Assembly: GCF_048593235.1 (NCBI RefSeq) | Contig: NC_133620.1 | Span: forward strand, 464,223,261-464,287,260 | From: Sminthopsis crassicaudata | Lineage: Eukaryota | Reading direction: 5' to 3' | DNA: 64,000 bases | In this document: positions 7,170 through 10,688 of the stretch, one piece after another | Layout: each line of letters starts with the position of its first letter | How positions within the stretch are numbered: the first letter of the stretch is position 1 | The notes under the pieces: model-generated | The model's input: only the letters and a program-made list of their open reading frames with translations | The model's database searches: none | Told to the model about the DNA's origin: nothing | Program-made: the position numbers and the translations under genes

Positions 7170-7639
7170 TGTTGGGATTGCTGAGTGAGGACTGGGGTTG
7201 TCTGGATGGTGACAAGGTGAGAATTCAGGTTTTCTGGACAATTACAAGGTGAGAACTCAGGTTGACTTGATAGAGGGGGCAAGCTCATTGGCTGGGGTGG
7301 TTCTTCCCAGAAGCCCTTGCATTATCCCACGCCCATTCTCTGGGAGGATAAAAAGAGACAGCACTGGGCGCAGAGAGCAGATCGGCCTGGAGAAGGATAA
7401 GAGCTGGAGGAGATTCAGAGCCAGGATTCAAGAAGGAAGACTCTGAATTGCATCAGGCTTGACGGGGCTCTCTGCAGGAAGGGAAGTCACTTCTTTGGAC
7501 AAGAGTTAACAGCAACTGCCTGGAGACAACGGTTCGTTACAGGAAGAAGAATCTGTCGGAGAGATTTGAGTAGAAGACACAGCAGATCTCTTCCCAGAGA
7601 GCGCGATCCAGCAGCTTCTAGAGACAACAGCTCGCTACA
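7170..7639 (+). repeat. 5' LTR (470 bp)
   Basis: Starts TGTTGGG, ends GCTACA. Matches 10219-10688 except at 3 positions (ctctgAattg/ctctgCattg; ctCgCtaca/ctTgTtaca). Inverted CCAAT (ATTGG 7287-7291) and TATA-like GATAAAAAG (7347-7355). Confidence 0.97.
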
Positions 7640-7642
7640 ATT

Positions 7643-7660
7643 TGGCACCCAACGTGGGGC
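7643..7660 (+). other. Primer-binding site 1, tRNA-Lys1,2 (CUU) type
   Basis: TGGCACCCAACGTGGGGC versus canonical TGGCGCCCAACGTGGGGC (17/18; the mismatch is at a CpG). Lies 3 nt after the LTR-terminal CA. Confidence 0.92.
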
Positions 7661-7711
7661 AAGGACTTTTGCTTATCCTGACAAGAGGAGCTAGACCAGA
7701 CCTTCGCAATT

Positions 7712-7729
7712 TGGCGCCCAAACAGGGAC
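7712..7729 (+). other. Primer-binding site 2, tRNA-Lys3 (UUU) type
   Basis: TGGCGCCCAAACAGGGAC versus canonical TGGCGCCCGAACAGGGAC (17/18; the mismatch is at a CpG). Preceded by CA+ATT, like PBS1. Confidence 0.9.
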
Positions 7730-7794
7730 AGACACAGTCCTGATTCTAGTGGAAAAGCTTCAGATCTAGATCTCAGTCTCTCTGACCCAGAACC

Positions 7795-7800
7795 GTGAGT
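7795..7800 (+). promoter_or_regulatory. Candidate retroviral major splice donor (GTGAGT) in the leader
   Basis: gaacc|GTGAGTaa between the PBS and the gag ATG, the usual position. Confidence 0.55.
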
Positions 7801-7897
7801 AACGAGGAAACTTTGTTAAAGATTAAGTGAGCGTGCTAATAGATAAATAAGGAACTTAACTTGTTAAGGGCTAAACCAGGAATCTCTTATAGCTGAA

Positions 7898-9721
7898 ATG
7901 GGGCAGATGTTAGCTATATTCAATCCCTGGACCTCAGCTGACTCAACCTCAGCCCCAGAAGCAACCTCAGCTCCATTCAGGAGTGGTACTATAGAGAGTA
8001 TAATCAAGATAATTGAGGAGCAGAGTTTACTTGTAACCTGGGTACAGATTGCTAAACTCTTGGCTGCATTAAGACGTACATCCCCTTGGTTCTTAGAGGA
8101 AGAAAAGATAGATGTAGATAAATGGAAGCTAGTGGGATATGAAATGAAAGAATTTCAAGCAAAAAATGGGCCTCGTTCAATTTCTGCAGAAGTATTTTAT
8201 ATCTACAACATAGTTCAATTAGCCTTAAACTATCAAGCAAGTTGTAGGAGAAGGAAAAGTTTTAAAAATGAACAGAGGAGGAAGTGTGAGGAAAAAAGGA
8301 AAGATCAAGATCTTTCCCTAGAGCAAGAGGATTTAAATGAGGAATTATGGTATGATTCTCTTGAAGAAGCTTCAACCCTGCCTAGAGAACAGATTATTGA
8401 CAGGCCCACATCAACCCCACCTTCAGAGATGGAGGAAGAAAGAGGGGAAGAGGCAGAAACACAAACAGAATTGCCTGTGAAGAAGCCTAAGCCTATGACA
8501 AGATTAGAAAAAGCATTGGTTAAAGCTAAGAGAGAAGGACAGGATATAAGTGATTTTATACATGCATATCCTGTGATTGAAAATACTGACTCTGTAGGTA
8601 AAAAAAGGAGAAGATATGCACCTTTAGATTTGAATAAAATTAAGGATTTGAAAAAAGGTTGTACCCTTTATGGGGCTACATCAGCTTATGTCAAAATGTT
8701 ACTAGATGGTTTGTCTTATGAAGTCCTAACCCCGAATGATTGGAAATCCATAGCAAGGACATGTCTGGAACCTGGAGAAAATTTATTATGGCTTGCAGAA
8801 TTTCATGAATTATGTAAAATTCAAGTCAGATGCAATTTGGAAATAGGAGTTAACACACAATTCACTTTTGAGCACTTGGCTGGTGAAGGTCGGTATGGAG
8901 AGAATTCGGAACAGATTAATTATACCATGACAATATATGAGCAAATTGCTAAGGCTGCAATAAAAGCTTGGGGTGTCCTCCCTGGACAGAAAGATCGCGG
9001 AGAGGCTTTCACTAAAATACAGCAAGGTCCCAATGAACCTTTTGCAGATTTTGTGGGACGTTTGCAAACTGCTGTCAAAAGAACTATTGGAGAAAATGCA
9101 GCTACAGAAATAATGACCAGACATCTGGCTAAGGAAAATGCCAACGAGATTTGTAAAAGAATTATATGGGGATTAGACAAAGATGCTCCTTTAGAGGAGA
9201 TCATAAGACGCTGTGCTACAGTGGGAACAAATGCTTTTTACACCCGGACAATGATGAATGTGGAAAGACAGGGTCCCTCCTGGCAAGGGCCTTCTAGAGA
9301 AACTCGGCGATGTTTTCAATGTGGAAAAATTGGGCATCTAAGAGCTCAGTGTAGATATGGAGATACAGTGAGAAGACAGGGTGAGAGAAGACCTAAAACC
9401 CCATGTCCAAAATGCAACAGAGCACTCCATTGGGCATCAGAGTGTAGAATAATTCAGGGAAATGGGATGAGGGGCCCAGGTCCAGGGCCCCAGGCAAAAA
9501 AGACTTGGGGCATGATGGCAGCTGATGTTATACCCAAAGAGTCTTTAGAAGGCCAGGACTCTGATTTAATCAACCAGCAGAAAAGCAATCACATGGCAGA
9601 AAGGGATTACCTGATAAGTGAGTCAAAAGGCAATCAGATTGCAAAAATGGATTATACTTGGGGAGAATACAGGCCTTTTAAACCAACAGGGCTATGTCCA
9701 GTGCAAACAATTCCAATGTAA
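7898..9721 (+). CDS. gag: Betaretroviral Gag polyprotein (MA-p12-like-CA-NC), 607 aa, intact
   Basis: MGQ start. MA motif SPWFLEEEKIDVDKWKLVG resembles MPMV CPWFPQEGTIDIKRWRRVG. CA starts PVIEN and includes YGATSAY and LTPNDWKSIAR. Major homology region IQQGPNEPFADFVGRL. Two CCHC knuckles, CFQCGKIGHLRAQC and CPKCNRALHWASEC. Confidence 0.96.
   Translation: MGQMLAIFNPWTSADSTSAPEATSAPFRSGTIESIIKIIEEQSLLVTWVQIAKLLAALRRTSPWFLEEEKIDVDKWKLVGYEMKEFQAKNGPRSISAEVFYIYNIVQLALNYQASCRRRKSFKNEQRRKCEEKRKDQDLSLEQEDLNEELWYDSLEEASTLPREQIIDRPTSTPPSEMEEERGEEAETQTELPVKKPKPMTRLEKALVKAKREGQDISDFIHAYPVIENTDSVGKKRRRYAPLDLNKIKDLKKGCTLYGATSAYVKMLLDGLSYEVLTPNDWKSIARTCLEPGENLLWLAEFHELCKIQVRCNLEIGVNTQFTFEHLAGEGRYGENSEQINYTMTIYEQIAKAAIKAWGVLPGQKDRGEAFTKIQQGPNEPFADFVGRLQTAVKRTIGENAATEIMTRHLAKENANEICKRIIWGLDKDAPLEEIIRRCATVGTNAFYTRTMMNVERQGPSWQGPSRETRRCFQCGKIGHLRAQCRYGDTVRRQGERRPKTPCPKCNRALHWASECRIIQGNGMRGPGPGPQAKKTWGMMAADVIPKESLEGQDSDLINQQKSNHMAERDYLISESKGNQIAKMDYTWGEYRPFKPTGLCPVQTIPM
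9457..9491 (+). promoter_or_regulatory. -1 ribosomal frameshift signal (gag-pro type)
   Basis: Slippery heptamer G GGA AAT (9457-9463) in gag frame, 7-nt spacer, then stem GGGGCCC (9471-9477) / loop AGGTCCA / GGGCCCC (9485-9491). Confidence 0.8.
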
Positions 9722-9725
9722 TTGC

Positions 9726-9918
9726 CAGATGATGAGAAGAGATTTAGAAAGTGGTAAATAGAAGAAAATTAGATAGGTTAACTGCCTGGGGGAGAGGGTT
9801 TGCTTGTATTTCTTCAGCAGGAGAAGGAATCAGATGGGTGCCAACGAGTCATATTCGCCTTGTCCATCAGAGAGAGACAGAAAAAGAGAAAGATCTCAAA
9901 ATAAAGGAGAAGATCTAA
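9726..9918 (+). pseudogene. Decayed integrase C-terminal domain relic
   Basis: Translates as QMMRRDLESGK*KK, then with a frameshift LDRLTAWGRGFACISSAGEGIRWVPTSHIRLVHQ...*. Matches the betaretroviral IN CTD motif W..P..WGRG(F/Y)AC...W.P..H. Confidence 0.85.
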
Positions 9919-10202
9919 GAAACATCTGACACTGAAAGAGCATGGATAATAAGAAGACTGTTAAAGAACTTTAAAAACCAGCAGGAATCATTGGACTTCC
10001 TCACACAAGATGAGACTAATGGACAATGGACTTATGGACATTTATAAATTTTCAATTTATGATTATGATTATGTTATATACTTCTAGCATGTGTTATGTT
10101 ACTATGTTACTATGTGCTTATGTAATTTATGTAATTATCTGTAATACTTCCCATATTGATGGATTTATGTTTCAAGGTCATGACTGTCCTATGTTCTAAA
10201 TC

Positions 10203-10218
10203 AAAAGAAAGGGGGAGA
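10203..10218 (+). other. Polypurine tract
   Basis: AAAAGAAAGGGGGAGA immediately before the 3' LTR TG. Confidence 0.92.
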
Positions 10219-10688
10219 TGTTGGGATTGCTGAGTGAGGACTGGGGTTGTCTGGATGGTGACAAGGTGAGAATTCAGGTTTTCTGGACAATTACAAGGTG
10301 AGAACTCAGGTTGACTTGATAGAGGGGGCAAGCTCATTGGCTGGGGTGGTTCTTCCCAGAAGCCCTTGCATTATCCCACGCCCATTCTCTGGGAGGATAA
10401 AAAGAGACAGCACTGGGCGCAGAGAGCAGATCGGCCTGGAGAAGGATAAGAGCTGGAGGAGATTCAGAGCCAGGATTCAAGAAGGAAGACTCTGCATTGC
10501 ATCAGGCTTGACGGGGCTCTCTGCAGGAAGGGAAGTCACTTCTTTGGACAAGAGTTAACAGCAACTGCCTGGAGACAACGGTTCGTTACAGGAAGAAGAA
10601 TCTGTCGGAGAGATTTGAGTAGAAGACACAGCAGATCTCTTCCCAGAGAGCGCGATCCAGCAGCTTCTAGAGACAACAGCTTGTTACA
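10219..10688 (+). repeat. 3' LTR (470 bp)
   Basis: Direct repeat of 7170-7639, preceded by the PPT and followed by TSD GTTCTG. Confidence 0.97.

Follow-up and report, generated by a model that had tools for sequence, protein, structure and literature searches.

A probable gag-only, non-autonomous derivative of an env-less betaretrovirus-like family, present at many sites in the genome of the fat-tailed dunnart

A 64-kb stretch of the genome of the fat-tailed dunnart, Sminthopsis crassicaudata (NCBI RefSeq assembly GCF_048593235.1, contig NC_133620.1, positions 464,223,261 to 464,287,260, forward strand; hereafter the window), contains an endogenous retrovirus (ERV) of 3,519 bp in which gag is the sole long open reading frame (ORF). 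The element is flanked by a target-site duplication (TSD), bounded by two long terminal repeats (LTRs), and equipped with sequences resembling primer-binding sites (PBS) and with a polypurine tract (PPT). Very probably, it is a single insertion of a unit that arose by deletion from an env-less, betaretrovirus-like family of dasyurids, retains only gag, is non-autonomous and has been copied repeatedly, presumably with enzymes provided in trans. Its features are as follows, with positions in the numbering of the window; L001 to L011 denote fetched comparison loci.

7164..7169, + strand: left TSD copy, GTTCTG; an identical hexamer abuts the outer edge of both LTRs
7170..7639, + strand: 5' LTR, 470 nt, TG...CA, aligned to 10219-10688; related LTRs bound every copy of the family
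7185..7272 (in the 3' LTR, 10234-10321), + strand: 32-nt tandem repeat of 2.8 units in U3, detected with Tandem Repeats Finder
7643..7660, + strand: PBS1, a primer-binding-site-like 18-mer 3 nt past the 5' LTR, recognised by position and conservation among copies
7712..7729, + strand: PBS2, a second PBS-like 18-mer in the leader, at the site of the LTR boundary of L003
7640..7897, + strand: leader between LTR and gag, presumably including the packaging region, recognised by sequence conservation
7898..9721, + strand: gag ORF, 607 codons plus stop, intact (ORF list, Pfam)
9457..9512, + strand: sequence inside gag resembling a gag/pro -1 frameshift signal (Rfam RF01097, below the gathering score)
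9682..9918, + strand: remnant of the 3' end of pol, from the integrase C-terminal domain through the pol stop (Pfam IN_DBD_C, amino acid identity to the Pol of L004 and L008)
9919..10202, + strand: unusually conserved non-coding stretch between the pol remnant and the PPT, with no Pfam match and a low density of variable sites (9722-10218)
10203..10218, + strand: PPT abutting the 3' LTR, recognised by position and conservation among copies
10219..10688, + strand: 3' LTR, 470 nt, aligned to the 5' LTR
10689..10694, + strand: right TSD copy, GTTCTG, identical to the left hexamer

The gag ORF is the only one longer than 110 aa in the element and the longest of the 64-kb window, and it is free of breaks. 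Its product starts with Met-Gly and comprises a matrix domain (Gag_p10, PF02337, aa 35-110, E=3e-10) and a capsid domain (Gag_p24, aa 240-437; N-terminal part PF00607, E=3e-34, C-terminal part PF19317, E=5e-20), all above the Pfam cut-offs, followed by two CCHC knuckles (aa 471-485 and 503-517) that are visible in the translation, with PF00098 and PF14787 scores below the cut-offs. Since the C-terminal tail aligns with the Tasmanian devil Gag P0006 to about residue 587, the long tail past the second zinc knuckle is genuine gag. The frameshift-like signal within gag scored 33.9 bits against a gathering score of 43 (E=0.002) and is thus sub-threshold. The best protein match is a 607-aa gag model of S. 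crassicaudata (98% identity), whose 90% identity cluster consists of eight dunnart models; more distant dunnart and Tasmanian devil gag models come next, and the closest named gag outside Sminthopsis is 59% identical. NCBI annotates gag-only copies (P0001, P0019-P0027) as protein-coding genes under the names “uncharacterized protein”, “ERV-K Gag polyprotein-like” and “IgE-binding protein-like”; four transcript models are given for one annotated copy, and in L004 and L011 the modelled splicing extends over tens of kb.

When the Pol and protease of a full-length relative were compared with the whole window by tblastn, only Pol residues 842-889 found a match, at 9772-9915. Since nothing but these last 48 Pol residues was detected, protease, reverse transcriptase (RT), RNase H, the integrase core and env are absent; env is likewise absent from the full-length relatives. 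When translations of the DNA from the gag stop to the PPT were searched with Pfam, the integrase C-terminal domain came up, with no env or other remnant, and pro has been reduced to 69 codons with 3 stops, the 5' part that overlaps the gag tail in the -1 frame. An earlier reading made from the letters of the DNA (the sequence-only reading) had described 470-bp LTRs with 3 differences, a 6-bp TSD, a PBS and a PPT around a stop-free gag without enzymes or env, and had placed the element in a marsupial. The layout was recovered throughout, with exactly 3 differences over 470 nt when the LTRs were aligned with their flanks, and the 98% match to a dunnart gag model agrees with the marsupial origin. 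The distance of about 480 bp that it gave between the gag stop and the PPT is 481 nt, but the boundary with pol lies further upstream, in that the last dozen or so gag codons already consist of integrase-derived DNA.

In comparison with two full-length relatives, L004 and L008, the window element lacks approximately 3.0 kb: gag-derived sequence extends to the far 3' end of the ORF and, after no more than about ten bases, gives way to integrase-derived sequence. The stop and the final dozen or so codons of gag are read from integrase-derived DNA in another frame. The pol remnant comprises 78 codons with 3 stops in the pol frame and matches IN_DBD_C (PF00552) with E=2e-5 and 24.2 bits against a cut-off of 21; matches to retroviral integrase C-terminal domains in PDB are weak (E 0.4-0.9) and serve as a consistency check only. 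At the amino acid level, the remnant is 100% identical to residues 842-889 of the L004 Pol and 79% identical to residues 842-886 of the L008 Pol. The two parts of the remnant differ in preservation: the 5' third holds the stops and shows 73-85% nucleotide identity to both full-length relatives, whereas the translation of the 3' two-thirds is 100% identical to the end of the open Pol of L004. Consequently, the “decayed integrase stub” of the sequence-only reading describes the 5' third well, but not the remainder. Decay of the 5' third predates the present copies, since gag-only copies agree there at 93.5-99.5%. Downstream of pol, L008 carries a 56-nt tandem array (15145-15485); at the corresponding place, the window element has one unit-like stretch (9954-10021, 72% identical).

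Comparison loci were reached via annotated gag protein models and comprise eleven dunnart loci and one Tasmanian devil locus. Eight further gag-only copies, 3.2-3.6 kb long and distributed over four chromosome records, were found to be colinear with the whole 3.5-kb element. The 81-nt stretch spanning the deletion junction (window 9640-9720) is present in all eight, gap-free and at 95-97.5% identity, with the match of L007 covering 70 nt across the junction; the full-length L004 and L008 and the devil locus L010 all lack a match to it. The TSD is perfect in every copy and differs from one to the next:

L001: TSD ACATCC; LTR pair with 0 differences over 435 nt
L002: TSD TTGTCC; LTR pair with 0 differences over 464 nt
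L003: TSD TCTAGC; LTR pair with 1 to 3 differences per roughly 460-470 nt
L005: TSD GATAAA; LTR pair with 0 differences over 409 nt
L006: TSD ACTATT; LTR pair with 1 to 3 differences per roughly 460-470 nt
L007: TSD GTCAAT; LTR pair about 6% diverged
L009: TSD GTTTAC; LTR pair with 1 to 3 differences per roughly 460-470 nt
L011: TSD CTTTTC; LTR pair with 10 differences over 458 nt

Together with the window element, the nine gag-only copies thus show nine different perfect 6-bp TSDs, and TSDs of this length were found in all 11 elements examined for them, gag-only and full-length. The distinct TSDs and the spread of LTR-pair ages indicate many independent integrations of the deleted unit, distributed over a long time, the latest of them very recent. 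Dating was done from LTR pairs only. In several copies, differences between the two LTRs cluster at a CpG-containing spot at the very end of U5 (window 7630-7639/10679-10688; also in L004, L009 and L011), and LTR-pair ages are therefore upper estimates, part of the divergence being contributed by this hotspot.

The same data bear on two other histories. According to the first, a full-length provirus inserted at the window locus and then lost pro-pol by a local, one-off deletion. Internal proviral deletions are common, and the window locus has no empty or full site copy for comparison; nevertheless, the same junction occurs without gaps in eight other copies at different sites with different TSDs, and the 3 stops in the 5' third of the remnant are common to a family with LTR pairs only 0-0.6% diverged, which leaves this history with hardly any credibility. 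The second, copying at the DNA level by segmental duplication or gene conversion, is just as implausible. Every copy has its own perfect 6-bp TSD and unrelated flanks, on four chromosomes, and the LTRs within a copy are far more alike than those of different copies, which differ by 3-8% (about 25% for L007). Moreover, a shift of the LTR boundary in L003, which depends on the PBS, needs reverse transcription.

This shift involves the two PBS-like 18-mers of the leader, which lie about 70 nt apart. In most copies, the LTR ends directly before PBS1. L003 is a gag-only copy with the same junction, and its LTRs (9343-9811 and 12431-12899) end directly before PBS2, so that PBS1 lies inside both of them. 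Such a layout would result if the downstream site had served to prime minus-strand synthesis in the replication cycle giving rise to L003, and the family looks as if either PBS-like site were able to prime. PBS1 follows the LTR with one mismatch in L002, L005 and L009, and as a variant in L001, L004 and L006; scans for tRNA genes, covering the window and nine loci, gave no hits. Other sequences likely to act in cis are also well preserved. Of the eight other gag-only copies, seven have an unchanged PPT at the equivalent position, as does L004, and L007 differs in one base; leader identity to the window element is 94.8-98.1% in the six younger aligned copies and 90.3% in L007, the oldest. LTR lengths in the family vary from 405 to 470 nt; gaps of 60-70 nt in the LTRs of L003, L004 and L005 probably reflect the number of repeat units in the U3 tandem repeat.

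Complete gag frames were found in the window element, L001, L002, L003 and L006; L005 and L009 have one premature stop each, and gag is degraded in L007. The copies fall into two types according to the N-terminal (matrix) segment of gag, which in type B (L006 10001-10450, L009 10001-10450, L007 9527-9928) is only about 31% identical to type A at the amino acid level. Both types have the same backbone and junction, type B having exchanged its N-terminal domain, and despite this exchange the type-B frame of L006 is still open over 582 codons, in line with selection on gag. The closest DNA match of the type-B segment among the fetched loci (69%) lies in another ERV, at L002 21082-21419. A further stretch resembling ERV gag, with 80% identity to that of the window element, lies at L002 21082-21824, about 8 kb downstream of the gag-only copy, and LTR-like fragments (83-87%) occur upstream of the copy in L006 (63-152 and 600-1181), which suggests that the surroundings of these two copies are locally dense in ERVs. 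No evidence of a gag-only form older than the dunnart lineage was obtained, the devil gag locus L010 being followed by pro-pol.

A further alternative is that the gag-only form does not propagate at all, but is made anew from full-length parents, by recurrent template jumps at a hotspot or by splicing, each product being a dead end. In its favour, about 4 nt of microhomology are present at the deletion bounds in both full-length relatives, and retroviral env splice acceptors usually lie near the end of pol. However, a splicing origin had to be rejected: in neither L004 nor L008 does the deleted stretch start with GT and end with AG in register with the junction. In the light of this and of the microhomology, a template jump or a DNA deletion is the likelier origin of the junction. 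Several observations also speak against recurrent formation by any route. Near the junction, gag-only copies are 93-99.5% identical to each other, compared with 58-85% to both full-length relatives, and their decayed remnant contains stops incompatible with a functioning parent. Furthermore, subtypes differing in LTR length, PBS usage and gag N-terminus all have the same junction, and none of the 11 loci is a full-length element with matching pol. Repeated creation from full-length parents is accordingly very improbable. Propagation of the deleted form itself, which the sequence-only reading had considered the probable unit being copied, is in line with the same junction occurring at nine sites with nine TSDs.

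Gag is under purifying selection. Over codons 1-520, pairwise dN/dS (ratio of non-synonymous to synonymous substitution rates) was 0.10-0.33 among the type-A copies (window, L001, L002, L003 and L005) and L004. The five gag-only type-A copies show 39 synonymous and 36 non-synonymous variable sites, i.e., a non-synonymous share of 0.48, compared with about 0.78 expected without selection (P=1e-8). Differences private to one copy are as depleted in non-synonymous changes as shared ones; since, in addition, the LTR pairs are nearly identical, most gag differences must have arisen before integration, in replicating lineages. In the same five copies, the densities of variable sites were as follows:

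LTRs: 12-13%
gag third positions: 6.4%
four-fold degenerate sites: 5.9%
leader: 5.4%
gag first and second positions: 3.0%
non-coding 3' internal stretch (9722-10218): 2.7% (P=0.004 versus third positions)

The low variation of the 3' internal stretch may reflect some cis function or recent homogenisation. Both this stretch and the leader fold no better than shuffled sequences (z=+1.96 and +1.22, respectively) and neither has an Rfam match, leaving a role as a transport element unsupported.

An open, selected gag might instead have been kept for the benefit of the host, for example as a dominant-negative restriction factor against the autonomous family. Restriction genes derived from gag exist (Fv1, cited in PMC1331978), and dN/dS below 1, together with the protein-coding annotation of several copies, one with four transcript models, would be in agreement with such a role. 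Nevertheless, the copies are numerous, LTR-flanked, recent and located at non-orthologous sites, leaving almost no time for selection on a host locus, and the equal depletion of private and shared differences places the selection before integration. Maintenance by host benefit is therefore very improbable. By analogy with the “parasite of a parasite” idea (PMC10924933), interference with helper elements could still arise as a side effect of the gag-only copies.

The enzymes for copying must come in trans, since the element encodes none, and the two full-length relatives are candidate enzyme donors. L004 (9338-15723) is 6.4 kb long, with 1 difference over 405 nt in its LTR pair, the TSD CTGAAG and no env. 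One frame of 785 codons encodes the gag domains and a retroviral protease; pol, of 889 codons, specifies RT and its thumb, RNase H, and integrase in its three domains (zinc, core, C-terminal). Its Gag is 96% identical to that of the window over about 520 residues, and it has the same LTR ends, PBS variant and PPT as the gag-only copies, all of which makes it a plausible donor. L008 is 6.9 kb long, with 2 differences over 304 nt in its LTR pair, the TSD GTCAGT and no env; its gag (608 codons, 56% identical), protease and 901-codon pol are all open. The searches suggested by the sequence-only reading have thus yielded dispersed copies with the same junction and different TSDs (at eight loci on four chromosomes), an intact gag in most of them with dN/dS well below 1, and, in L004, a potential full-length helper with the same LTR ends, PBS type and PPT. 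The L004 Pol matches those of bat faecal retrovirus 1, simian retrovirus 1 and IAP at 40-45%, the first being the closest (45%). The same Pol (12301-14970) is 93% identical at the amino acid level to the Tasmanian devil protein P0028 over 59% of its length, while the closest devil Gag is only 59% identical to that of the window; either conservation across dasyurid lineages is far stronger for pol than for gag, or pol has been exchanged between them.

L004 is a mosaic. Its identity to L008 is 65-78% in gag, about 55% in the LTRs and 87-98% in pol. On a finer scale, it is 92-100% window-like up to the region of the frameshift-like signal, L008-like in the middle, and again 98-100% window-like from inside the integrase remnant onwards; both switch points lie inside sequence that the gag-only genome has retained. 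When a neighbour-joining tree was built from the capsid-nucleocapsid portion of gag, L007, the old gag-only copy, branched off at the base and L004 was placed among the young gag-only copies, with very low bootstraps in the young cluster. L004 may have regained pro-pol by recombination between a gag-only and a full-length genome, which would imply their co-packaging; we give this origin a reasonable chance, at best an even one. Alternatively, L004 might represent a surviving full-length type-A lineage that recombines frequently. The combination of L008-like pol and type-A ends in a recently integrated element argues that L008-like enzymes work on type-A cis sequences. A bolder proposal, which we consider doubtful, is that the gag-only unit, far from being a dead-end parasite, is the main evolving backbone (LTRs, PBS, leader, gag, 3' end) of a modular, effectively bipartite system, with a selected Gag of its own and a borrowed, slowly evolving pro-pol that is common to several lineages and can be regained by recombination following co-packaging; L004 would be a product of this kind.

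The history most consistent with these results would begin with a single ancestral deletion of about 3.0 kb that took out protease, RT, RNase H and the greater part of integrase, so that the 3' terminus of gag came to lie next to the integrase C-terminal domain. Gag itself would have remained complete, and the deletion would have spared the leader with its two alternative primer-binding sites, the 3' untranslated stretch, the PPT and the LTRs at either end. The resulting unit of 3.2-3.6 kb has since gone through reverse transcription and integration again and again, beginning when LTR pairs now several percent diverged were formed and continuing to effectively the present. In each cycle, the RNA of the element would be translated into Gag, which may preferentially capture the RNA that encodes it; such cis-preference would be the most likely reason for the selection on Gag. 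The particles would then co-assemble with a few helper Gag-Pro-Pol molecules from full-length relatives such as L004 or L008, whose reverse transcriptase and integrase would act on the common PBS, PPT and LTR ends. Since the family lacks env, the cycle is expected to be intracellular, as proposed for MEBrv 3 and IAP (PMC11334065). Trans-mobilisation, the identity of the enzyme supplier, the cis-preference of Gag and current activity are all predictions from sequence.

The full-length parent family is probably marsupial endogenous betaretrovirus 3 (MEBrv 3; Harding et al., 2024), an env-less family of elements of about 7.3 kb with a 469-nt LTR (PMC11334065). Its closest exogenous Pol is that of bat faecal associated retrovirus 1 (44%), and intact copies are present in the fat-tailed dunnart; it makes up about two thirds of dasyurid ERVs, and identical or near-identical LTRs indicate recent activity (PMC11334065). 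Dasyurid host, class II gag-pro-pol organisation without env, LTR length (469 versus 470 nt) and closest Pol (44-45%) all agree. However, the published elements are autonomous and about 7.3 kb long, whereas the window element, at 3.5 kb and without pro and pol, is a derivative at best; no gag-only derivative is described in the literature that we found on MEBrv 3. Assignment to class II ERVs is further supported by the Gag_p10 matrix, the p24 capsid, the two CCHC motifs, the betaretroviral Pol matches and the 6-bp TSD, and the non-autonomous character by the missing enzymes, the multiplication of the defect at nine sites, and the coding-competent relative L004 with matching cis ends.

Several mammalian systems resemble this arrangement. 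In the mouse, the env-less autonomous MusD and its shorter partner ETn have common LTRs, PBS and PPT, and ETn is mobilised in trans (PMC1331978); however, ETn has no coding capacity and its centre has been replaced by unrelated sequence, whereas the window element is a clean deletion with a complete, selected gag. The murine IAP I-delta-1 is likewise an env-less class II deletion derivative that needs complementation in trans, and it causes most new insertions (PMC1331978), but its 1.9-kb deletion falls within gag-pol, so that gag is not whole, and that of the window element starts at the end of gag. Among the young class II elements of bovine ERVK[2-1-LTR], a competent minority (C-type) coexists with a defective majority (D-type, 85% of elements) that dominates new insertions; recombinants occur, one such element having been seen, and it is here that the “parasite of a parasite” idea was put forward (PMC10924933). 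In contrast to the dunnart family, which lacks env and keeps gag intact, D-type elements have no intact gene, and their clade keeps env and probably reinfects. KoRV and recKoRV provide a further functional analogue (cited in PMC10924933). None of the defective forms in these systems (ETn/MusD, IAP I-delta-1, bovine D-type, recKoRV) keeps a complete gene, and the gag-only architecture has a named precedent only in plants. There, TR-GAG elements are LTR elements of less than 4 kb with a single GAG ORF and a presumably borrowed Pol (PMC4350172); they are plant LTR retrotransposons, whereas the window element encodes a retroviral Gag_p10/p24 protein in a marsupial host, and the likeness is one of convergence, not of membership.

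Domestication as an Fv1-like gag gene was also considered and rejected, since the element is multi-copy with near-identical LTRs and fresh TSDs, and the closest named gag outside Sminthopsis is only 59% identical. MaLR elements, with which the sequence-only reading had compared the window element, belong to class III and are ancient, non-autonomous, generally without an intact gag, and thought to depend on the related ERV-L. The analogy holds for the non-autonomous dependence, but it is a loose one, the window element being class II, young and intact in gag; ETn/MusD, IAP I-delta-1 and the bovine D-type are closer.

Certain points weigh against the proposed reading. The sample is small (11 dunnart loci), and the route via gag models favours open gag frames, so that neither copy number nor the ratio of gag-only to full-length elements can be derived from it. 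An exact look-up of the window gag product gave no match among recorded products, and mobilisation, expression and the Gag protein itself are all deduced from DNA. With regard to the helpers, L004 has gag and protease in one continuous frame, unlike L008, which makes its competence uncertain, and the LTR ends of L008 differ from those of the gag-only type. Part of the dN/dS signal below 1 could have been imported by recombination with full-length elements having a selected gag, and the parent family was matched to MEBrv 3 by description alone.

The known defective ERV partners of mouse, cattle and koala have lost all genes or carry fused fragments, whereas the dunnart form keeps a complete, selected gag while spreading. 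Such a system makes cis-preference addressable with descriptive data, namely whether its own Gag gives an RNA an advantage in copying, and it bears on the parasite-of-parasite dynamics that shape a still young ERV family. The host is a laboratory marsupial model. In dasyurids, genome instability has been proposed to stem in part from MEBrv 3, and what is counted as “MEBrv 3 ERVs” in their genomes may largely be the gag-only, non-autonomous form. For annotators, it is relevant that several gag-only copies are currently listed as ordinary protein-coding genes.

The window as a whole has a vertebrate-like composition without runs of N, and its CpG observed/expected ratio is 0.07-0.19 outside two CpG-rich regions. 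Ten long ORFs in or near these regions gave no Pfam match. The regions themselves (20001-22000 and 38001-42000) have a GC content of 0.57-0.68 and a CpG observed/expected ratio of up to 0.75, and are probably host gene promoters.

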